Shown piece by piece: positions 9,327 to 62,404 of a stretch of DNA of 64,000 bases; within the stretch, counting starts at the first letter, position 1; the number at the start of each line of letters is the position of its first letter. Position numbers and translations under genes: made by a program. The notes under the pieces are model-generated. The model was not told where the DNA came from, did no database searches, and worked only from the letters and a program-made list of their open reading frames with translations. The DNA lies in IMG/VR virus record IMGVR_UViG_3300023174_000040, positions 62,001 through 126,000 of that record. One strand, given 5' to 3'.

Positions 9327-9345
9327 GTTTCTTTTTGGTACGGTT
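9327..9345 (+). promoter_or_regulatory. 19-nt conserved motif GTTTCYYTYYGGTACGGTW (candidate phage promoter)
   Basis: gtttctttttggtacggtt lies 66 nt upstream of ATG 9411; a degenerate copy is at 9224-9243. Confidence 0.65.
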
Positions 9346-10282: not shown

Positions 10283-11368
10283 ATGTCTGTGATCGAATCT
10301 GCCAATCTGTATTATAAAGAAGGCGCCAGTGACAAAGTTTATCACGCTACCATTGAAGATATTAGCAATGGGTATGTTGTGAATTTTAGTTATGGACGTA
10401 GGGGAAGTGCCTTGAAAACAGGTAGTAAAACCCAAAGTCCAACTACTCTCGAAGATGCCAAGACTATTTTTAATAATCTTGTAAAAGAAAAAACGAGCAA
10501 GGGATATAGGTTTGTTGAAAATGCCAATCCCTCTGAAATTCCTGTTGTGAGTGATGATCTGCCTGATACTCCCAATGAGATACAGTGCGTTCTCTTAAAT
10601 CCAATTAGTCAAGATGAAGCTGAAAAGCTTATTAATGATGATAATTGGGCTCTCCAGCACAAACTTGATGGTGTCCGGTTTATGCTGGGCAAGGAAAAGG
10701 ATCAGTCTCCCCACGGAATTAATCGTAAAGGCAAAAGGATCAGCATTCCTACTGTGATTTGGAATGTTGTCACTAAGTTTGATGATAATTTCTTAGTTGA
10801 TGGTGAACTAATTGGTGAGACTTTGCACGTTTTTGACATTCTCGAATATCGTAGCGAATGTCTCAGGAAGAAAAGTTTGATTGAGAGGATGAAATATCTC
10901 AAGACTTTGTTTAAGTACATTGAATCTGAGAATATTATTCATACTCCTCTTTATCTTGAAAAGAAAGAAAAGCGTGAGGTTTATGACAGTTTGCTTAAAG
11001 AAAACAAAGAAGGAGTTGTCTTTAAGCATATTGATGCTCACTATAATATTGGTCGCCCTGCAAGTGGCGGAAACTATTTGAAGTACAAGTTCTATAGCAC
11101 TTGTAGTTGCGTGGTAACTGATATTAATAAAAAGCGTAGTGCCGCTATTGGTCTTTATAAGGGAAAGAAACTTGTGAAGGCTGGTAACGTAACCATTCCT
11201 GTTAATTTCGATGTGCCGAATGTGGGCGAAATCGTAGAGGTAAAATACCTCTACGCCAGAAAGCAATCTGGTTCTCTGTATCAACCTATTTATTTGGGTG
11301 TTAGGAATGACATCTCAAAAGAAGAGTGCCAGCAAACACAATTAAAGTTTAAAGCAGAAGAAGAATGA
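10283..11368 (+). CDS. lig: WGR-domain ATP-dependent DNA ligase
   Basis: N-terminal WGR-like SDKVY...FSYGRRG; adenylation motif QHKLDGVR, VDGE, FDIL, EGVVFK, LKYKF; OB fold with EVKYL and YLGVRND. Confidence 0.9.
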   Translation: MSVIESANLYYKEGASDKVYHATIEDISNGYVVNFSYGRRGSALKTGSKTQSPTTLEDAKTIFNNLVKEKTSKGYRFVENANPSEIPVVSDDLPDTPNEIQCVLLNPISQDEAEKLINDDNWALQHKLDGVRFMLGKEKDQSPHGINRKGKRISIPTVIWNVVTKFDDNFLVDGELIGETLHVFDILEYRSECLRKKSLIERMKYLKTLFKYIESENIIHTPLYLEKKEKREVYDSLLKENKEGVVFKHIDAHYNIGRPASGGNYLKYKFYSTCSCVVTDINKKRSAAIGLYKGKKLVKAGNVTIPVNFDVPNVGEIVEVKYLYARKQSGSLYQPIYLGVRNDISKEECQQTQLKFKAEEE

Positions 11369-44760: not shown

Positions 44761-45645
44761 GTGAAAATGACTAGTTACTCAGAAAAATATCACCAGTTCA
44801 TCTCAAACGTTACTTATGAGGATGTTGATTGTTTCATTAAAAATGGAACTATGATTAATGGGGAAAAGCCCAACAATATTCAAAAGATAGCTTTGTTTTC
44901 AATTATTAAGACAGAACCATATTATGCTTACTGCTATGCTAGGGATGTAATTAAAGACCGGTGGATTGAAGTTGAAGAAATCATAAAGAATAGCCGTCCA
45001 GAATATATCCATCATTATGCCAAAGATGTTATCAAGGGACGGTGGATTGAGTGCGAAGAGATTATCAAGAGTGATCCCCAGTATGCTTATCTTTATTCCA
45101 GAGATGTAATTAAAAATCGTTGGAATGAAGCAGAAGAGATTATTAAGACTGACCCATATTATGCCTATCTCTATGCTAGAGATATAATTAAAGATCGCTG
45201 GATTGAAGCAGAAAAAATTATTAAAACTAGTCCTGCATATGTTTACTATTACACCAAAGATGTCCTAAAAGATAGATGGATTGAAGCTGAGAGAGTTCTA
45301 ATCCACTATATGTATCTTTACGCCAAAGATATAATTAAAGGCAGATGGATCGAATCAGAAGGGATTATTAAAACTGATCCACGATATGCCTATTATTATG
45401 CTAGAGACGTAATCGAAGGTCGCTGGGTTGACGCAGAAGAAACCATAAAAACTAGTCCAGAGTATGCCTGTGGTTACGCTAAAGATGTAATTAAAGGAAG
45501 ATGGATTGAAGCAGAAGAAGTCATCAAGACTAGTCCAGAATTTCTTTATCAATATGCAGTCGAAGTAATCAAAGGAAGATTATCAGAAGAACTTGAAAGT
45601 GTTTTTGAAACACTCGAGTTTCCTTCCGGTACGGTTGGAGAGTAG
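44761..45645 (+). CDS. tandem-repeat (about 25-aa) helical solenoid protein
   Basis: About 9 copies of P.YAY.YARDVIKGRW.EAE.IIK. Confidence 0.85.
   Translation: MKMTSYSEKYHQFISNVTYEDVDCFIKNGTMINGEKPNNIQKIALFSIIKTEPYYAYCYARDVIKDRWIEVEEIIKNSRPEYIHHYAKDVIKGRWIECEEIIKSDPQYAYLYSRDVIKNRWNEAEEIIKTDPYYAYLYARDIIKDRWIEAEKIIKTSPAYVYYYTKDVLKDRWIEAERVLIHYMYLYAKDIIKGRWIESEGIIKTDPRYAYYYARDVIEGRWVDAEETIKTSPEYACGYAKDVIKGRWIEAEEVIKTSPEFLYQYAVEVIKGRLSEELESVFETLEFPSGTVGE
45618..45636 (+). promoter_or_regulatory. conserved 19-nt motif copy
   Basis: gtttccttccggtacggtt upstream of 45679. Confidence 0.65.
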
Positions 45646-45939: not shown

Positions 45940-45951
45940 TAAAACAAACAA

Positions 45952-45970
45952 GTTTCCTTCCGGTACGGTT
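45952..45970 (+). promoter_or_regulatory. conserved 19-nt motif copy upstream of the Tas-like operon
   Basis: gtttccttccggtacggtt upstream of ATG 46005. Confidence 0.65.
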
Positions 45971-46004
45971 GAGAGTAGTCTCCATAAAACAAAAGAAACA
46001 AAAC

Positions 46005-46367
46005 ATGAAAACAGTTACTAAAAAGCAAGTAATGATTGGTAATTTGGAAGTTGTTGGTGACGTTCATCTTCTTGAGCAGTGTCACGGCTGCTTGAGTCTT
46101 AATTGGCAGGGAAATGTTGAACGTGTATTGACGCCCACTACAACCAATACGTTCAACGTGCCTCCCGGCAAACGATGGTACGAGCCTATCGACAAGGGCG
46201 GAATCCCGCTGTATGGGTTTAACGAAGCCGGGAATGTAATTTGTTGTATGGTTCTTTTAGCCAAGGGTGAACAAGACCATAAGGGCAACAAGTACAATAG
46301 CGATGTTATTTTGGTTGCACCAGCCGAACGAACAGATACTTGGGGCTGGGACGTTTTGCAGAAGTAG
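46005..46367 (+). CDS. hypothetical protein
   Basis: Start MKTVTKK within ORF 45969..46367. Confidence 0.7.
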   Translation: MKTVTKKQVMIGNLEVVGDVHLLEQCHGCLSLNWQGNVERVLTPTTTNTFNVPPGKRWYEPIDKGGIPLYGFNEAGNVICCMVLLAKGEQDHKGNKYNSDVILVAPAERTDTWGWDVLQK

Positions 46368-46401
46368 TGATCCCCATAATTTCATAGAAAGATAAAATAA
46401 T

Positions 46402-47328
46402 ATGTCAAAGGAAAGTGCAACAAAGAAGAAGTGTCCCACTTGCGGCAAGGGCATTTCAAGCAAGAAGATTGCAGATAGCCTAATGCCAGATAGCCTGACA
46501 AGTCTTGGGACTGTTGCTAGGCTCAATAAAGATCTCACTAATAAGATCAAGACCCTCACCAAGGATGAAGTGAGGTATATTGTCGATTACTATTATATGA
46601 TTCAAGAGAATCGTAAGCGAAGCACTAATCAGATCACCGCTTTTGGCAAGGATAAAGAGCCTCATGAACTCTTTAGTTTCTTGAACGATCAAACAGAAGT
46701 TCTTGAAACTCAAATCAAACGGGCTATGGATCACTGGACTGATAGTTTTTTGATTGCAAAGATTTTGAAGGATAAGGTTTACGGAATCGGTCCTGTGATT
46801 ACTGCTGGTCTTGTTGCTCATATTGACATCAATAAGGCAAAGACCGCTGGTGCTATTTGGCGTTATGCTGGTCTTGATCCCACAAGTAAGTGGGAAAAGG
46901 GTCAAAAGCGTCCCTGGAACGCCAGCCTTAAAACCCTGTGCTGGAAGGTTGGACAGAGTTTCATGAAGTTCTCTGGTAAGGAAGAGTGCTTCTATGGTAA
47001 GCTTTACAAGTCCCAGAAGGAGTTTCTTGTAAAAAAGAACCTTGAAGGCGGATTCAAGGAACTTGCTGATTCTGTCTTGAATTCAAAGAACTTCAAGAAC
47101 AAGGAAGTTATCGCTAAGTATAAGAGTGGAATTCTGCCAGATGGTCATGTGGATGCTATGGCAAGGCGTTGGGTGGTTAAGTTGTTCCTGAGTAATGTCC
47201 ATGAACTTTGGTGCAAGGTTGAGGGAATTGATTGCCCCAAGCCTTATGTCATGGCTCATTTGGGACACACCCATCATATCATTCAGCCAAATCTTTTGGA
47301 TATTGATGAGTATTTGAAGAAGGATTAA
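46402..47328 (+). CDS. Nop-domain / IS110-related RNA-binding protein, TasA-like (no RuvC or HNH domain)
   Basis: Coiled coil, then VYGIGPVITAGLVAHIDI...GAIWRYAGLDP...WNASLKTLCW...HVDAMARRWVVKLFL (Transposase_20/Nop-like); no N-terminal DEDD RuvC domain and no IS110 SG serine motif; linked to 36-nt dual-repeat arrays. Confidence 0.8.
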   Translation: MSKESATKKKCPTCGKGISSKKIADSLMPDSLTSLGTVARLNKDLTNKIKTLTKDEVRYIVDYYYMIQENRKRSTNQITAFGKDKEPHELFSFLNDQTEVLETQIKRAMDHWTDSFLIAKILKDKVYGIGPVITAGLVAHIDINKAKTAGAIWRYAGLDPTSKWEKGQKRPWNASLKTLCWKVGQSFMKFSGKEECFYGKLYKSQKEFLVKKNLEGGFKELADSVLNSKNFKNKEVIAKYKSGILPDGHVDAMARRWVVKLFLSNVHELWCKVEGIDCPKPYVMAHLGHTHHIIQPNLLDIDEYLKKD

Positions 47329-47331
47329 AAC

Positions 47332-47490
47332 ATGAATTACTATATTGAAAAGCATGATATGGAAATTATTCTTGATGCTTTAGAATGTCTGAGTGAACAT
47401 ATCAAGACTAATAACAATAGTCCATATCCTTGGACTGTTGAAGATGTTGATGCACTTTTTCAAAGTTTTGATAATAGCAGGTCAGAGTAA
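47332..47490 (+). CDS. small hypothetical protein
   Basis: 52-aa ORF read by hand (MNYYIEKHD...). Confidence 0.5.
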   Translation: MNYYIEKHDMEIILDALECLSEHIKTNNNSPYPWTVEDVDALFQSFDNSRSE

Positions 47491-47536
47491 CAGATTATTG
47501 AAAAACTGTTTAAGTCAATGTCTGGGTAAGTAAACA

Positions 47537-47848
47537 ATGAATAAAAAGTTAAATTTTTTTAAAGATTTCACTTTAGGCGATGTCCTAAACAGTATAAATG
47601 AAAAATTTTTAGTTGATATGTCTAAAGATGAAGAAGAATACTTTCTCTGCCAAATAGAAATAGATAAAGTCGAACAGAATGATGTTGGAATTTTTGATGG
47701 AAAAAATTGTATGCGTTGTCTTTCCTCAAAAGATGTTCTTAAATTAATTGATCATATTTTAACAAAAGTCAAGAGTGAACCAGGTTTCTTGATTTTAACA
47801 TGCGTCATGAGTGAACCAGAAGCCCAGATAGGTTTATTGATAACATGA
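47537..47848 (+). CDS. hypothetical protein whose 3' end is TIGR-like repeat DNA
   Basis: ORF track; the last ~30 codons overlap the satellite array. Confidence 0.55.
   Translation: MNKKLNFFKDFTLGDVLNSINEKFLVDMSKDEEEYFLCQIEIDKVEQNDVGIFDGKNCMRCLSSKDVLKLIDHILTKVKSEPGFLILTCVMSEPEAQIGLLIT
47756..47829 (+). repeat. two-unit satellite TIGR-like array
   Basis: ATTTTAACA-aaagtcaag-AGTGAACC-aggtttcttg-ATTTTAACA-tgcgtcatg-AGTGAACC-agaagcccag-AT. Confidence 0.85.
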
Positions 47849-47926
47849 AAAAATAGTAGAGATCCGGCCGATTCCTTTTACCATTCGGCCCGAGAATAAA
47901 GAAACAAAAAGAAAACCTTAAAAATT

Positions 47927-48382
47927 ATGAATACTATTAAAATAGCCGCTGAAAAAGACTTGAATGTTGTAAATAAAATTTTTGAATGTTGGGACTTTCT
48001 TAAACTTTATGGATTTGTTCACGAGTTTGATGAAGATGAAGAGCAAATTTTAAAGTTTCTAACCGAGACTAAAAAGACTATTGAGAATTTATCAAACAAC
48101 CCAATTCAGACATTGATGGAATCCGATCCACATAATGAAGTTGTAGAAATTAATTTAAGCGGAAACAACGACCCGCTCAAAAGTTTTGTTCAAAATTTAG
48201 AAGATACTAATAAGAACAAAGTATTTTTCTTTTATGCGGATGTTTACGACCAAGTTCCAAATTTTGATTGGCCTAAAATTTGGGAAAAAATTGCCAAAAA
48301 TACAATCGAAGCACTACTGATGGAAAAGTATGAAGTAAAGTGGATGACCGGCGGATACGTTGGCAAATTTCCGGTTGAATAA
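47927..48382 (+). CDS. hypothetical protein
   Basis: ORF track. Confidence 0.7.
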   Translation: MNTIKIAAEKDLNVVNKIFECWDFLKLYGFVHEFDEDEEQILKFLTETKKTIENLSNNPIQTLMESDPHNEVVEINLSGNNDPLKSFVQNLEDTNKNKVFFFYADVYDQVPNFDWPKIWEKIAKNTIEALLMEKYEVKWMTGGYVGKFPVE

Positions 48383-48488
48383 AACCACATCGTCTGACTT
48401 GTGGTCAAAGATTGGAATTGTTTGGAACAATGTTATAAGTTAGACACCAGGTGATCTTTGAAAATCTTTAAATAAAGGAAAAGAAAAA

Positions 48489-48794
48489 ATGAACAATAAG
48501 ACTGGTTCAATGGTTTATGCTAAGATTACAGGTCGAGGTGAGTTTCCTATTGATATGTTAAGGTATGATTTGTGTAGTCCTGCAACAGAAGAAGATAGCA
48601 ATTTGATTCGCAGGACATTTTATGGTCTTAATTATAACTGGATTGTGATTGTTAAGCGACCTTTGCTTGAACGACGGCTTAAGAACAATCCTGTTTTTAC
48701 TTATGGTCGTTGGCAGAGTTTTGGTTGTAATATTGTTGAAGTTAATTCTTGTTACGAAAGTCGGATGGTAAAACCGGAAGTAATTGCCGGGTAA
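48489..48794 (+). CDS. hypothetical phage protein
   Basis: GRGEFPIDMLRYD...GRWQSFG. Confidence 0.75.
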   Translation: MNNKTGSMVYAKITGRGEFPIDMLRYDLCSPATEEDSNLIRRTFYGLNYNWIVIVKRPLLERRLKNNPVFTYGRWQSFGCNIVEVNSCYESRMVKPEVIAG

Positions 48795-48813
48795 TTTAAA
48801 ACTGGAGAAAAAA

Positions 48814-49140
48814 ATGCTAACCGAAATTAGTGTTGTTGCAAGCGATGATGAAACTTTTGAAAAGTATGGTGACGAAATAGACTTTAACATTGAAGTTGAA
48901 TGGGACGAATCAACAATAAGTTGGGAAAGTGATATTTGGAATACTTACGTTGGACCAACTGGAATTTTAGAAGAGTTTGTTGATGCTAAACTTAAGCAAG
49001 CCAAGTTAGATGGCGAACTTATGCCCCTGACTGAAGATCTTGAAAAGTTTGCAATCAAGAAACTGAGGGAGGGATGGCTTAAGGCCACAAATACATCAAA
49101 TGGCTATAGTGGTGAAATCTTAGATATGTATGAAGAATAA
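48814..49140 (+). CDS. acidic hypothetical protein
   Basis: ggaga RBS. Confidence 0.7.
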   Translation: MLTEISVVASDDETFEKYGDEIDFNIEVEWDESTISWESDIWNTYVGPTGILEEFVDAKLKQAKLDGELMPLTEDLEKFAIKKLREGWLKATNTSNGYSGEILDMYEE

Positions 49141-49767
49141 ATGATAAAACAAGCAATGAACGAGTTGTCTATTGAAGAAATTCAAAAAAATTTGAATTTT
49201 ACTGTCCCCAATATCACAGATTTTGTAGAAAAATACAAAAATCATTTTGAAGAATTTCTAAAAGATCCGACAGAACTTGTCACAAAAATAATTCGTGCAA
49301 TAGTGTCTAAAAAAAATTATGAGCATTTAGCAGAAGAATTAGATTTGCCGCCTTCATATGTTTATAGTATTGGCGTAATGATGAAAAATAATTCAGAATT
49401 TATAAAAAATTCTAATTCATTTGAGTCTATGCTTTGTTCTTTTTCAAAAAATATAAATTACGAATCTTTTTTACATTCAACAAAAGCAAAAAAAGAAAGC
49501 GAATTTATAATCAATATTTACAATTTTGAATTTCCAGATTGGTTTGACGAATCTGAACCATTGGTGATAACTTATCCTTGTGATATTTCTAATTACTTTG
49601 AATTACAAGATAATTTACATTTGAGGATTTTTGAAAACAATCATTGGGAATGTCCTTTGAGAAATCAAACTGGAGATAAACATCATTACATTACTGCTGA
49701 AACCAATCTTCAAAAAGAAGAAATGTTGCAATTTTTATTGTTGGGCTGTAAATATTTATTTTATTGA
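49141..49767 (+). CDS. hypothetical protein
   Basis: ORF track. Confidence 0.7.
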   Translation: MIKQAMNELSIEEIQKNLNFTVPNITDFVEKYKNHFEEFLKDPTELVTKIIRAIVSKKNYEHLAEELDLPPSYVYSIGVMMKNNSEFIKNSNSFESMLCSFSKNINYESFLHSTKAKKESEFIINIYNFEFPDWFDESEPLVITYPCDISNYFELQDNLHLRIFENNHWECPLRNQTGDKHHYITAETNLQKEEMLQFLLLGCKYLFY

Positions 49768-49779
49768 GAAGAAAAATTT

Positions 49780-50184
49780 ATGAATATCGGAAAACTTATT
49801 AAAGAAAATCGCAAAAAATTAAATATGACCCAAAAAGAGTTGGCACAAACTCTTGGAATTAGTCATATCACAGTTTGCAGATGGGAAACTAATTTTATAG
49901 TTCCAACAAATTATAACTGGATAGTTCTACAAAATTTATTCGGACTACGAAAAGACAATTTAATAATGCCAACTAAAGGCTTTACACCAGTAAAAGTTAG
50001 AATTATTAAGCCTTTGAAAAAATTCAAGAAAATAAATAAAACCGCTGAAAGAAACAAACAAATTATCGAAAATTATAAAAAAGGAATACCAATAGACAAT
50101 TTAGCAAAATTCTACTCCATAAAGGAAAGTACAATAAAAAGTATTCTACTTAGTCAAAAAATAAAATTAAATGTAAGAGAATAA
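49780..50184 (+). CDS. XRE/Cro-family HTH transcriptional regulator
   Basis: IKENRKKLNMTQKELAQTLGISHITVCRWE; second HTH-like tail IDNLAKFYSIKESTI. Confidence 0.85.
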   Translation: MNIGKLIKENRKKLNMTQKELAQTLGISHITVCRWETNFIVPTNYNWIVLQNLFGLRKDNLIMPTKGFTPVKVRIIKPLKKFKKINKTAERNKQIIENYKKGIPIDNLAKFYSIKESTIKSILLSQKIKLNVRE

Positions 50185-50211
50185 GATTTTGATTCCCAGC
50201 CAGTGGCTGGG

Positions 50212-50840
50212 ATTTTAACAAGAGTCAAGAGTGAACCAGAAGCCCAGATTTTTTCATTTTGCCGGAGTGAACCAACCTGATTGATTTTAACAAGGACGAG
50301 AAGTGAACCATTATTAACGATTTTAACATGAACGTTGAGTGAGTCATCAGACTGGATTTTTACATACTGCCGGAGCGAACCAAGCCCGACGATTTTAACA
50401 AGGTGATCAAGTGAACCAGCGATGGTGATTTTTAACAAAAGAACCATCATTCGATATTTAACAAGGTAGTTGAGTGAACCAATGTGAGAGATTTTGCATG
50501 TATAGTGAGTGAACCTTCGACCCGGATTTTAACACTGATCAAGAGTGAACCTAGCCCTTCGATTTTAACAAGGTAGTTGAGTGAACCACAGTCGGGAATT
50601 TTAACAAATTTGGTGAGTGAACCATCATTCGATATTTTAACAAGGTAGTTGAGTGAACCACAGACCCGGATTTTAAACAGTGATCAACAGTGAACCAATT
50701 TGCTTGATTTTAACAAGGTGAAAGAGTGAACCTAGTGCCGGTATTTTAACAATGTGCGAGAGTGAACCAAATAAGAAGATTTTAACATGATGGTTTAGTG
50801 AACCTAGCTGTGCGATTTTAACAATGTGCGAGAGTGAACC
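50212..50840 (+). repeat. TIGR-like tandem interspaced guide RNA array (18 units, 36-nt period)
   Basis: Alternating ATTTTAACA and AGTGAACC blocks separated by variable 9-nt and 10-nt segments; one unit partly deleted. Confidence 0.88.
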
Positions 50841-50891
50841 AAAAAATTCTACTTGAAAAAAGTTTAAAAGTGTGTTAAAGTGAAAAACCAA

Positions 50892-50910
50892 GTTTCCCTC
50901 CGGTACGGTT
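50892..50910 (+). promoter_or_regulatory. conserved 19-nt motif copy
   Basis: gtttccctccggtacggtt just downstream of the array. Confidence 0.65.
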
Positions 50911-51024
50911 GGAGGGAACTTTGTGAGCGTGACTTGGGGCTGCCTCTCCTAAATCTATAGTCCGTAAAAAGTGTAAAAATAATCAGTGCAGAATAACCCA
51001 CAAACACTCAAAGGAGAAATTAAA

Positions 51025-51381: not shown

Positions 51382-51466
51382 GCTGAAGTGGCGAAACTGG
51401 CGAAACGCAGGGGACTTAAAATCCCCCACATTAGAAACACTGCGGGTTCGAATCCCGCCTTCAGCA
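51382..51466 (+). tRNA. tRNA-Leu(UAA)
   Basis: GCTGAAG/CTTCAGC acceptor, GGGGA-CTTAAAA-TCCCC anticodon arm, long variable arm, TTCGAAT loop. Confidence 0.95.
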
Positions 51467-51482
51467 CTGTAAATAAAAACAA

Positions 51483-51842
51483 GGGGGCGTAAAGGTATCG
51501 ACTGGATAAAAAGATTTATAACTGCATGTCGAGGTTAGTCGAACGGCCTCGTTAAAATTCGACTAAAGCCTTAACTGGCACTGTTAATTACGCAATGGCT
51601 GCCTGATAAAAAGGGCAACCACGAATCTAGGAAGCTAATGTTGGATGCGTCCTAAAATTCGTCGTCAAATCCAACTGGTTTTCTGGTGGTCAACTTACCT
51701 GAAAACGAGAAAATAGGTTGAGAGATTTTAAAGACTTTTGTTTATTGTAATCTTTAAAATCTATTTGAACAATAAACCAAACATGTGAAGAAGTTATATT
51801 TTGATTTATTTCAGGACAGGAGTTCGACTCTCCTCGCCTCCA
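51483..51842 (+). ncRNA. ssrA: tmRNA; tag (A)GTVNYAMAA*
   Basis: 5' GGGGGCG pairs with 3' CGCCTCC-A, G-U at position 3, T-arm caggag-ttcgact-ctcct; tag ORF ggc act gtt aat tac gca atg gct gcc tga. Confidence 0.92.
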
Positions 51843-51867
51843 TTTATAATTTCAACTAAAGGAAAAC

Positions 51868-56778: not shown

Positions 56779-57042
56779 CCGAAGGTAGCAAAACGGTTAA
56801 TGCAACAAACTCATGAATTTTCGTGCCATACGATTGGAAACTTCGTATGGGATGTCGTCAAATTCGGTGAAACCTAAATGCGTGAGCATATGGCAATGCC
56901 GAGCGAAGCCCGTAAGGGAACGTGTAGAGACTTAACGGCGACCACCTAAATCGTAAGATATGGTGAAGACAAAGTCCAAGGAGTGGTGAAAATCACACAA
57001 ACTTGAATTTGTAGACTGTGGGTTCGAATCCCACCCTTCGGA
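56779..57042 (+). tRNA. tRNA(CAU), probably Ile2, interrupted by a group I intron
   Basis: Exons 56779-56814 and 57006-57042 give CCGAAGG/CCTTCGG-A and ACAAA-CTCATAA-TTTGT; lies 16 nt after tilS. Confidence 0.88.
56815..57005 (+). ncRNA. group I self-splicing intron (191 nt, no ORF)
   Basis: aaattcggtgaa, caatgccgagc, gtagagact, aaagtcc; terminal G; P1 CATGAA/TTCGTG with a U-G wobble at the 5' splice site. Confidence 0.9.
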
Positions 57043-57046
57043 CGTA

Positions 57047-60144: not shown

Positions 60145-60240
60145 ATGGAACACCTAAAAGACTTAAAGATTCTTCCTACCGATTATTTTGAGTATGGAGG
60201 ACAAATTGAACGATGGAAAGGTGAACTACCCACCCCCTAA
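60145..60240 (+). pseudogene. short ORF apparently truncated by the TnpB element
   Basis: MEHLKDLKILPTDYFEYGGQIERWK runs into the element end at 60221 and stops within it. Confidence 0.45.
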
Positions 60241-61430
60241 AGGGAGTGGGCTTCAAGTTTCATAGCCTTGTCTAACGACAACGACTCCACTTGTTTTTGT
60301 TTATTGAGCGACTTGGTTCCCAAACCACTCATATTCAAACCTTGTTTTAGTATGTTGAGACTGGCGTTGTGGTCTCGGTCAATGTTCTTCCCACAAACGC
60401 ACTTCCATTCACGATCTTTCAGCGATAATTCTTGATTGATGTATCCACAATCAAAGCAAGTTTTACTGCTTGGGAAAAATCGGTCTATCTTAATCAGTGT
60501 TCGTCCATACCATTCTGCTTTGTAGGATAGTTGACGAACGAATTCTCCCCAACCGCAATTCATCACCGATTTTGCCAACTTATGATTACTCATCATGCCC
60601 TTTACATTAAGGTCTTCTACGCATATGATTTGGTTTTCGTCAATCAACTTTCTGGAAAGTTTATGCAAGAAGTCCGTTCTATTGTTGGTGATTTTTTCAT
60701 ATATCTTGGCTACTTTAAGTCTTTGTTTTCCTCTGGTGGTTCCTCCTTTTGTCTTTTTGCTCAATTGTCTTTGGTTGTATTTTAACTTTTTCTCTAACTT
60801 GTGGTAGTGTTTAGGGTTGTCAAAAACTTCGGCGTTGGAGCAAACAGCAAAGCTTTTGATGCCCAAATCAACACCTATTTTGTTTTTGTTTTTCTTGAGT
60901 TTATTTTGCTCAACTTCACAAGTAAGTGAAACAAAATACTTGTTTGTTGAAGTCTTGGATATGGTGATGAACCTTATCTCACCAAATTCACGATGGATGT
61001 TTAGTCTGATTCCTTCCTTGAATTTGGGAAAATATATTCTGTCATTCTTGACAGAGATGTGTTGTGGAACTCTGAAACTTTGCTTTTTGTGTTTTGACTT
61101 GAAGATTGGAAACTTGGTTTCTTTCCTGAAAAACTTGTTGTATGCTGTGTCCAAGTCACGCAATGTGTGTTGCAATGTTTGGCTGTTGACTTCCCTAAGC
61201 CAGTTGTATTCGGTCTTCTTTTTAACCTTGGTCAGTTCGTTGGCACAATCGTAGTAGTTCAATGTCTTCTTGTTGTCTAAATACTCTTCTTTTCGTCTGT
61301 TCAAGAAATAATTCCACACGAACCTTCTGCAACCAAAGTGTTGACTCAGTTTTTCTTTTTGGTCTTTTGTGGGTAGTAGTTGAAACTTAAACGATTTGAG
61401 CATACAATGGTATGTATGCAGGTCAGTCCA
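60221..61430 (-). mobile_element. TnpB-only IS200/IS605-family (IS1341-like) element
   Basis: Right end reads ...gaagcccactccctttagggggtgggtagttcac on the minus strand; left boundary is approximate; no tnpA. Confidence 0.75.
60237..61403 (-). CDS. tnpB: RNA-guided endonuclease TnpB
   Basis: N-terminal HTH_OrfB-like region, RuvC IGVDLG / VEDL / DRDHNA, zinc finger CFDCG...CVCG. Confidence 0.95.
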   Translation of the reverse strand: MLKSFKFQLLPTKDQKEKLSQHFGCRRFVWNYFLNRRKEEYLDNKKTLNYYDCANELTKVKKKTEYNWLREVNSQTLQHTLRDLDTAYNKFFRKETKFPIFKSKHKKQSFRVPQHISVKNDRIYFPKFKEGIRLNIHREFGEIRFITISKTSTNKYFVSLTCEVEQNKLKKNKNKIGVDLGIKSFAVCSNAEVFDNPKHYHKLEKKLKYNQRQLSKKTKGGTTRGKQRLKVAKIYEKITNNRTDFLHKLSRKLIDENQIICVEDLNVKGMMSNHKLAKSVMNCGWGEFVRQLSYKAEWYGRTLIKIDRFFPSSKTCFDCGYINQELSLKDREWKCVCGKNIDRDHNASLNILKQGLNMSGLGTKSLNKQKQVESLSLDKAMKLEAHSL

Positions 61431-61975: not shown

Positions 61976-62404
61976 ATGAAAAATCCAATGAAAAAGTCAG
62001 AAATTTTGGCGAGTCTTAAAAAGAATTATCCCAACACTGGATTCATTACTATCTCTTATGAGGGAAGTGGAGATAGTTTCAATGATTTCTACGACTGCAA
62101 TGCCTATGCTAAGTGTAGTTTGAAAAATCCTAAACTTTTGGATAGTTTTAGTGAAAAAGGCCGACCGCAAAGTGAAGACCTTAAAGATATAAGCAAAGAT
62201 CTTCATGAGACTAAAAACATTCTGGATAGTTGTATTTGGAGTGTTCTTGAGAGTCATGATGAAGTGAATTTTAACAACGATGGTTGCGAGGGCGAAATTA
62301 CATTTGATCTAGATAATGATAAGATCATTGTTTATAATCGTTACCGTGTAACAGAAACAGTGGACTCTCCTGACTACGAATACAAGGCAGGTGATTTTGA
62401 ATAA
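61976..62404 (+). CDS. hypothetical protein (DUF6878-like)
   Basis: ISYEGSGDS...NNDGCEGEI. Confidence 0.65.
   Translation: MKNPMKKSEILASLKKNYPNTGFITISYEGSGDSFNDFYDCNAYAKCSLKNPKLLDSFSEKGRPQSEDLKDISKDLHETKNILDSCIWSVLESHDEVNFNNDGCEGEITFDLDNDKIIVYNRYRVTETVDSPDYEYKAGDFE

Follow-up and report, generated by a model that had tools for sequence, protein, structure and literature searches.

What would a phage do with an RNA-binding protein of the IS110/Nop type that has no recombinase domain, and with an array of short alternating repeats downstream of its gene? The question is raised by a stretch of 64,000 nt (the window), positions 62,001 to 126,000 of the IMG/VR record IMGVR_UViG_3300023174_000040, a phage contig of 323,267 bp, and an answer had been offered by an original prediction made from the letters of that stretch: a TIGR-Tas system built on a Tas protein without a nuclease, TasA. 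Overall, we believe it likely that the locus is such a TIGR-TasA system, in which dual-spacer guides lead TasA to DNA that it binds and bends, blocking transcription or replication without cutting. The assignment to a TasA-type system is borne out by the score of a curated protein model, by likeness in sequence and fold to the nuclease-bearing Tas proteins TasH and TasR, by the missing nuclease, by an array of the type known from the SpTIGR-TasH system of Salicola phage CGphi29, and by arrays at 78 of 80 loci with related proteins. TIGR-Tas systems were described in 2025 (PMC12045711). By late 2026, 6,685 TIGR arrays had been catalogued.

A Tas protein without a nuclease

The gene at the centre of the locus is the following, assigned from NCBIfam, PDB sequence matches, an AlphaFold2 model and Foldseek:

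46402..47328, plus strand: tasA, encoding a 308-aa nuclease-free Tas protein

The open reading frame (ORF) and its IS110/Nop-type core are present as originally described, with the motif run YGIGPVITAGLVAHID...WRYAGLDP at residues 127-160. The NCBIfam model NF052498.1 (TIGR_Tas_endo) matches the protein with 184.8 bits (cut-off 100), its profile positions 1-214 of 215 aligned to residues 57-270, and among PDB sequences phmmer retrieves SpTasH (E 1.1e-16) and TaTasR (E 7.9e-12); BLASTP with SpTasH gives E 2e-23. The AlphaFold2 model, made with a multiple alignment of 36 homologues, has a mean predicted local distance difference test score (pLDDT) of 86.3 and is all-helical, without beta strands. 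The N-terminal residues (~1-30) are disordered. Ahead of the Nop-type RNA-binding domain stand two long helices (54-83 and 89-115, pLDDT > 90), which align with the coiled-coil region of TasH and TasR. When the model was compared with known structures, as the original prediction had proposed, TasH and TasR chains, each at probability 1.0, took the first 11 places among the Foldseek matches in the PDB, and the match in 12th place had an E value of 0.6. Judged by sequence and modelled fold together, TasA is a Tas-family protein.

Neither Pfam nor NCBIfam returns a match to HNH, RuvC or DEDD domains in TasA. The catalytic H54 of the SpTasH HNH domain falls on R40 in the pairwise alignment, and the N-terminal CPTCG (a CxxC pattern) is not conserved, being missing from 80%-identical homologues. 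Because the model consists of helices throughout and its short N-terminus is disordered, we read the protein as having no HNH or RuvC domain, and in sequence and predicted structure it is TasA-type rather than TasH or TasR. An IS110 RNA-guided transposase is ruled out, as the original prediction had already held in denying the protein a RuvC DEDD or IS110 catalytic domain: the Pfam DEDD_Tnp_IS110 domain is not matched, and NCBIfam transpos_IS110 reaches 26.7 bits (cut-off 140), over residues 69-162 alone. Like the IS110 (bridge RNA) recombinases, TasA has a Nop-like RNA-binding domain, and this common feature accounts both for a sub-threshold match (20.9 bits, threshold 21.3) to Pfam Transposase_20, the RNA-binding domain at the C-terminus of IS110 proteins, and for the "transposase" labels on homologues. 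Unlike those enzymes, it has no DEDD/RuvC-like or catalytic serine domain, and it comes with a guide array instead of a single bridge RNA.

The closest solved relative is SpTasH (PDB 9W03, 9W04, 21KL), with the phmmer E value given above, a Foldseek template modelling (TM) score of up to 0.73 by target and 24% sequence identity. Residues Y282 and H289 of TasA align with Y289 and H296 of SpTasH, the pair that cuts precursor guide RNA, or pre-tigRNA (PMC13421893), and P281, H289 and H291 are invariant among the 36 homologues. The two proteins part at the N-terminus, where SpTasH has an active HNH nuclease with which it cuts DNA and TasA has R40 and the short disordered region. By published descriptions, the solo architecture of coiled coil and Nop domain without a nuclease is also that of FpTasA, PlTasA and MbTasA, although PlTasA has a stem-loop array, FpTasA has 9-nt spacers, and none of the three is from a huge phage.

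Among 80 IMG/VR loci with TasA relatives of 43-100% identity, 78 have period-36 arrays, nearly all adjoining the gene. Because relatives number 17 in the genomes of 185,579 species (one genome each), the clade is, by these searches, mainly viral, and since none of the 17 exceeds 52% identity, the host of the phage is not inferable from them. The clade motif GLDPTSKWEKGQKRPWNA occurs in at least 92 proteins in the part of the Faure et al. supplement that was searched, and neither the exact TasA protein nor the IMG sample ids turned up in that part. The clade is thus already in the published Tas catalogue, and the NCBI curated model names the protein; this is a known system, with no new mechanism.

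Across tasA (window 46000-46999) the G+C fraction is 0.43, against about 0.29-0.37 in the neighbouring kilobases, which hints at horizontal acquisition of the gene.

A split array and its predicted guides

Downstream of tasA, all on the plus strand, lie two arrays and the DNA that separates them:

47755..47836, plus strand: small TIGR array of two units, in the 3' end of ORF 47537..47848, found by a k-mer periodicity scan
47837..50192, plus strand: 2.4-kb cassette between the small and main arrays, with no counterpart in the relative L007 or the other fetched loci
47927..48382, 48489..48794, 48784..49140, 49141..49767 and 49780..50184, plus strand: the five ORFs of the cassette
50193..50877, plus strand: main TIGR array, defined by repeat pattern, 36-nt spacing and column information content

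The pattern GAGTGAACCA-N8-GATTTTAACA (up to three mismatches) occurs 15 times, always on the plus strand, against 0.01 copies expected from shuffles, and unit starts lie 36 nt apart with a few slips to 35 or 37. The original prediction had described an 18-unit array of this period about 2.9 kb downstream of the gene, and its units, period and distance stand; one unit, however, has a deletion, and a degenerate terminal unit had been overlooked. The main array has 18 inter-edge intervals, 17 of them intact and one (~50426-50452) with ~10 nt deleted; it opens with a degenerate edge, TTCCCAGCCA, and closes with the degenerate terminal unit, which extends it to about 50877. Per-column information content resolves each unit into a 10-8-10-8 layout, in which repeats of 10 nt alternate with variable blocks of 8 nt. 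This replaces the 9-nt spacers proposed earlier and the division into N9 and N10 blocks, which is right as a pattern without being the biological partition, and 17 of the 18 intervals have exact 8-nt spacers and near-consensus repeats. The two repeats resemble each other: in keeping with matching box D and box C nucleotides at the start and end of edge and loop alike, both start with GA and end with CA, and 7 of 10 positions are identical.

What had been taken for a single array is accompanied by a second. A period-36 k-mer detector that recovers both the SpTIGR array and the main array of the window also reveals the small one; Tandem Repeats Finder (min_score 40) returned nothing on SpTIGR. 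The small array has a single complete predicted tigRNA (47778-47813, with spacers GGTTTCTT and TGCGTCAT) with a partial unit on either side, and it is homologous to the opening units of the single contiguous array of L007, a 251-kb contig with a 99%-identical TasA, in which the units of the small and main arrays are contiguous. Because the two form one array in so close a relative, the cassette, on this sequence comparison, sits inside a formerly single array. Its last ORF, 49780..50184, encodes an XRE-type helix-turn-helix (HTH) regulator (HTH_3, 33.6 bits), and the remaining four have no match to an annotated family. A CRISPR-Cas locus is ruled out by the two alternating 10-nt repeats, the 8-nt spacers and the lack of any significant match to Cas families among the flanking ORFs (E <= 1e-3), where the sole Cas-named match, to Cas12k, reached 15.4 bits against a cut-off of 150.

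Where, then, would the array transcript be cut? We take GAGTGAACCA, divided as GAGTG/AACCA, to be the likely processed edge repeat and GATTTTAACA the loop, because this pattern matches the published edges of SpTasH and TaTasR. In the Faure et al. supplement, the synthetic SpTasH tigRNA5 runs AGCCA, 8 nt, AAGACAACCA, 8 nt, AAGCG, and the native TaTasR unit has the edge TGCG/AGCCA. Three further observations agree with this register: the array of the relative L004, whose TasA is 80% identical, stops at a truncated GAGTGA, after which come a hairpin and a T-run; the guide TCATTCGA/AGGTAGTT occurs twice, copied as an entire unit; and most of the spacer pairs that the window and L007 have kept intact flank GATTTTAACA. 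The opposite assignment, with GATTTTAACA as the edge repeat, had been suggested by the array ends and was dropped on the published SpTasH and TaTasR tigRNAs, the L004 array end and the conserved spacer pairs. The register of the original prediction, set on AGTGAACC, likewise gives way, by homology to published tigRNAs, to one centred on GATTTTAACA. The predicted tigRNA therefore reads AACCA, 8-nt spacer A, GAUUUUAACA, 8-nt spacer B, GAGUG, 36 nt in all. In the alternative, processed RNAs would be centred on GAGUGAACCA rather than GAUUUUAACA, a change that would touch the register alone. With the register centred on GAUUUUAACA, the two arrays hold 18 intact guides, of which 17 are distinct; besides these there are a broken unit and a degenerate terminal one.

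The likeness to SpTIGR extends to the whole design. Both systems are phage-borne, with a 10-nt edge, an 8-nt spacer, a 10-nt loop and an 8-nt spacer making up 36-nt tigRNAs (predicted ones in the present case), both have the edge pattern RAGYGARCCA, and the Tyr/His processing pair is conserved; the SpTIGR repeats both have the form AAG...CCA, comparable to the GA...CA ends found here. The placing of the array differs: that of SpTIGR comes straight after the gene, and the present one is divided, with part of it 2.9 kb off.

In L004, the array is broken at 11170-11290 by ~120 nt comprising a GC-rich hairpin and a T-run terminator, after which the same repeats resume; this is another insertion of foreign DNA in a TIGR array.

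Transcription, targets and mode of action

Two copies of a 25-nt motif bracket the locus:

45950..45974, plus strand: 25-nt motif AGTTTCCYTCCGGTACGGTTGRAG, 450 nt upstream of tasA; candidate start of the transcription unit
50890..50914, plus strand: 25-nt motif AGTTTCCYTCCGGTACGGTTGRAG, just past the array; forms a 9-bp hairpin

The motif has four copies in all (45616, 45950, 50890 and 61489), every one on the plus strand and 40-100 nt upstream of an ORF, where none would be expected, and we regard it as a candidate phage-specific promoter or processing signal. The copy at 45950 may mark the start of the transcription unit. It is here that the original prediction had placed an early promoter, at 45952; the site is indeed one of the four motif copies, and it has no match to the sigma-70 consensus. 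Counts of sigma-70 promoters and terminators between 45600 and 51500 do not rise above those of shuffles. The arrays are probably transcribed on the plus strand together with tasA. Looser copies of the motif core are seen at 9334, 12964, 16659, 20937 and 21495.

Regardless of how the transcript begins, the general pathway can be sketched from what is published on related proteins. TasA would bind the precursor and cut inside each GAGTG/AACCA edge repeat with Y282 and H289, if these residues act as their counterparts do in SpTasH, and processing would yield 36-nt tigRNAs with two 8-nt spacers. A TasA dimer loaded with one tigRNA would then recognise a 16-bp site in double-stranded DNA, made up of spacer A and the reverse complement of spacer B, each spacer pairing with a different DNA strand and no protospacer-adjacent motif (PAM) being needed. 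Because TasA has no nuclease domain, we favour binding and blocking over cutting: the protein would bind and bend the DNA and so obstruct transcription or replication. FpTasA, PlTasA and MbTasA bind processed tigRNAs, MbTasA and PlTasA bind DNA, and MbTasA represses transcription (PMC12045711; bioRxiv 10.64898/2026.09.09.750476; bioRxiv 10.64898/2026.08.11.744272). RNA-guided repression of transcription, including that of a chromosomal gene, has been shown for TasA and for catalytically dead TasR (bioRxiv 10.64898/2026.09.09.750476). The scheme also resembles that of the nuclease-free CRISPR effectors of type IV and type V-M, in which processed repeat-spacer arrays guide DNA binding without cutting and which are borne by mobile elements with fast guide turnover; unlike them, it uses alternating 10-nt repeats and split 8-nt spacers that would pair with opposite strands, and it has no cas genes, no PAM and no Cas1 or Cas2.

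A protein that binds without cutting might instead be a targeting module alone, one that recruits a nuclease or other effector in trans so that the target is destroyed and not merely obstructed. At some loci a ParB-like partner shares an operon with TasA (PMC12045711), and the ORFs that neighbour tasA here have no known function, both of which would suit such an arrangement. We nonetheless consider it very unlikely, for in the fetched loci tasA keeps no neighbouring gene outside the huge-phage relatives, its surroundings here show no nuclease or ParB domain, and published TasA ribonucleoproteins bind on their own.

Consider next what the guides might recognise. Predicted targets were built by joining spacer A to the reverse complement of spacer B, in that order, a rule checked against the TaTasR target oligonucleotide. 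Both registers and both half-site orders were tried in the window, and there as in the other target searches the outcome did not rise above chance. Guide content was also compared between relatives: 11 of the 17 guides are intact in L007 despite rearrangement of the arrays, 0 of 17 are common to L008 (TasA 93% identical, 44 guides), and none is common to L004.

Several results weigh against binding and blocking by a working TIGR-TasA system, and most of them come from these searches. No guide has a site with one mismatch or fewer in the 64-kb window, and no such site was found for 113 guides from five arrays in ~200 kb of related phage DNA. Five scans of IMG/VR for exact 16-mers returned 4-24 matches each, none of them in the contig of the phage itself; on follow-up by clustering and tblastx, no second guide matched the same loci and those loci showed no similarity to the window, and to judge by sequence the matches look like chance. 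Beyond the searches, the main array stands 2.9 kb past the tasA stop, and since that distance, five inserted ORFs and a hairpin lie between, co-transcription of gene and array is not assured. One unit is broken, several loop repeats measure 9 or 11 nt, and three relatives with TasA 81-86% identical have no array within fetched flanks of up to 10 kb.

These last irregularities could also mean that the locus is a decaying or idle remnant, its array disrupted by the cassette and its expression and use lost. The split of 2.4 kb, the deletion in one unit, the off-length loops and the close relatives without a detectable array would all be expected of such a remnant. We judge it extremely improbable nonetheless: the tasA ORF is intact and retains the Tyr/His pair along with every residue invariant in the family, 17 of 18 intervals still have spacers of exactly 8 nt and near-consensus repeats, and the 11 guides found again in L007 have come through a rearrangement of the array unbroken.

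The searches bear equally on the idea that the phage regulates itself, its tigRNAs steering TasA to promoters or coding regions of the 323-kb genome for temporal control. In favour of this stand the published repression of transcription by TasA and dead TasR, including at a chromosomal gene, the position of the locus amid early-type genes and next to the HTH regulator, and one two-mismatch site in the cassette ORF 47927..48382. Against it, no site with one mismatch or fewer lies in the window, where the guides give 2 two-mismatch sites, close to the 1.1 of the non-cognate control; the phage's own IMG/VR contig lacks any exact match to four guides that are conserved with L007; and the complete replacement of guides seen at 93% TasA identity is not what one would expect of regulators of conserved genes. 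We therefore hold self-regulation to be unlikely. Because guides turn over fast and no guide matches the available phage DNA, foreign DNA (competing phages, other mobile elements or the host) is the more likely target of the TIGR-TasA system than the phage's own genes. Since no target was found, a role for TasA as a repressor or competition factor is one that we infer, in agreement with published work on TasA proteins.

Guide turnover and genomic surroundings

The relatives also suggest how such arrays change. L008 contains near-duplicate guides (4 pairs at three mismatches or fewer, against 0.01 expected), which, as a pattern in sequence, points to segmental duplication followed by divergence. 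The huge phages L008 (12510-12560) and L010 (5910-5960), whose TasA proteins were each about 61% identical to the query in this comparison of guide sharing and which differ in how tas and arrays are arranged (those of L010 lie upstream), have the identical guide TATCCGCT/ACGGAAAA, for which the probability of chance is about 2e-7. The predicted target of this guide has 24 exact matches in IMG/VR, and because these span 14 unrelated lineages no target can be assigned to it. The comparison of the window with L007 and L008 would fit a scheme, which we advance as possible but doubtful, in which whole guides are shuffled, duplicated and lost by recombination mostly at edge repeats, a cassette has been captured, and guide sets are fully replaced over short distances, so that arrays evolve without adaptation machinery. 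If this is true, the shuffling and replacement of guides would speak for an arms race with competing phages or hosts, one conducted by a binder that does not cut.

What the locus adds to a known system is modest, and lies in the split array and the comparison of close relatives. A reading of raw sequence can recognise a TIGR-TasA locus, and the field gains a well-annotated natural example from a huge phage. Two questions occupy that field: what the guides of natural TIGR systems are aimed at, and how guides enter and leave the arrays. On the second, this locus together with L007 and L008 makes up a small comparative set; on the first, it contributes a negative result alone.

The window also encodes homologues of RIIA and RIIB, NAMPT, a PRPP synthetase-like enzyme and a DNA ligase, a gene set that fits a huge lytic phage, and a megablast search with the locus found no match among GenBank phages. 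Upstream of tasA, at window 44761-45645 on the plus strand, lies the gene for a 294-aa protein with about eight tandem 26-aa repeats (a 78-nt period); it has no family assignment and keeps this position in the huge-phage relatives L002, L007, L008 and L010.

About 500 nt past the array, at window 51382-51845 on the plus strand, a transfer RNA (tRNA) gene for leucine, tRNA-Leu (TAA), is directly followed by a full-length transfer-messenger RNA (tmRNA; Rfam RF00023, 139.6 bits against a gathering score of 47), for which ARAGORN gives the tag peptide GTVNYAMAA. The tmRNA is 91% identical in L008 and is not at the corresponding position in L007. Further along, a group I intron (Rfam RF00028, 59.2 bits against a gathering score of 50) at window 56805-57043 on the plus strand is abutted or overlapped by a tRNA-like ARAGORN call with an odd anticodon loop (56976-57043), and the two may form an intron-containing tRNA gene. 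Finally, a TnpB-type gene at window 60237-61403 on the minus strand, with OrfB_IS605, Cas12f1-like TNB and HTH_OrfB_IS605 domains all above their Pfam cut-offs, is the second gene of an RNA-guided-nuclease family in the window.

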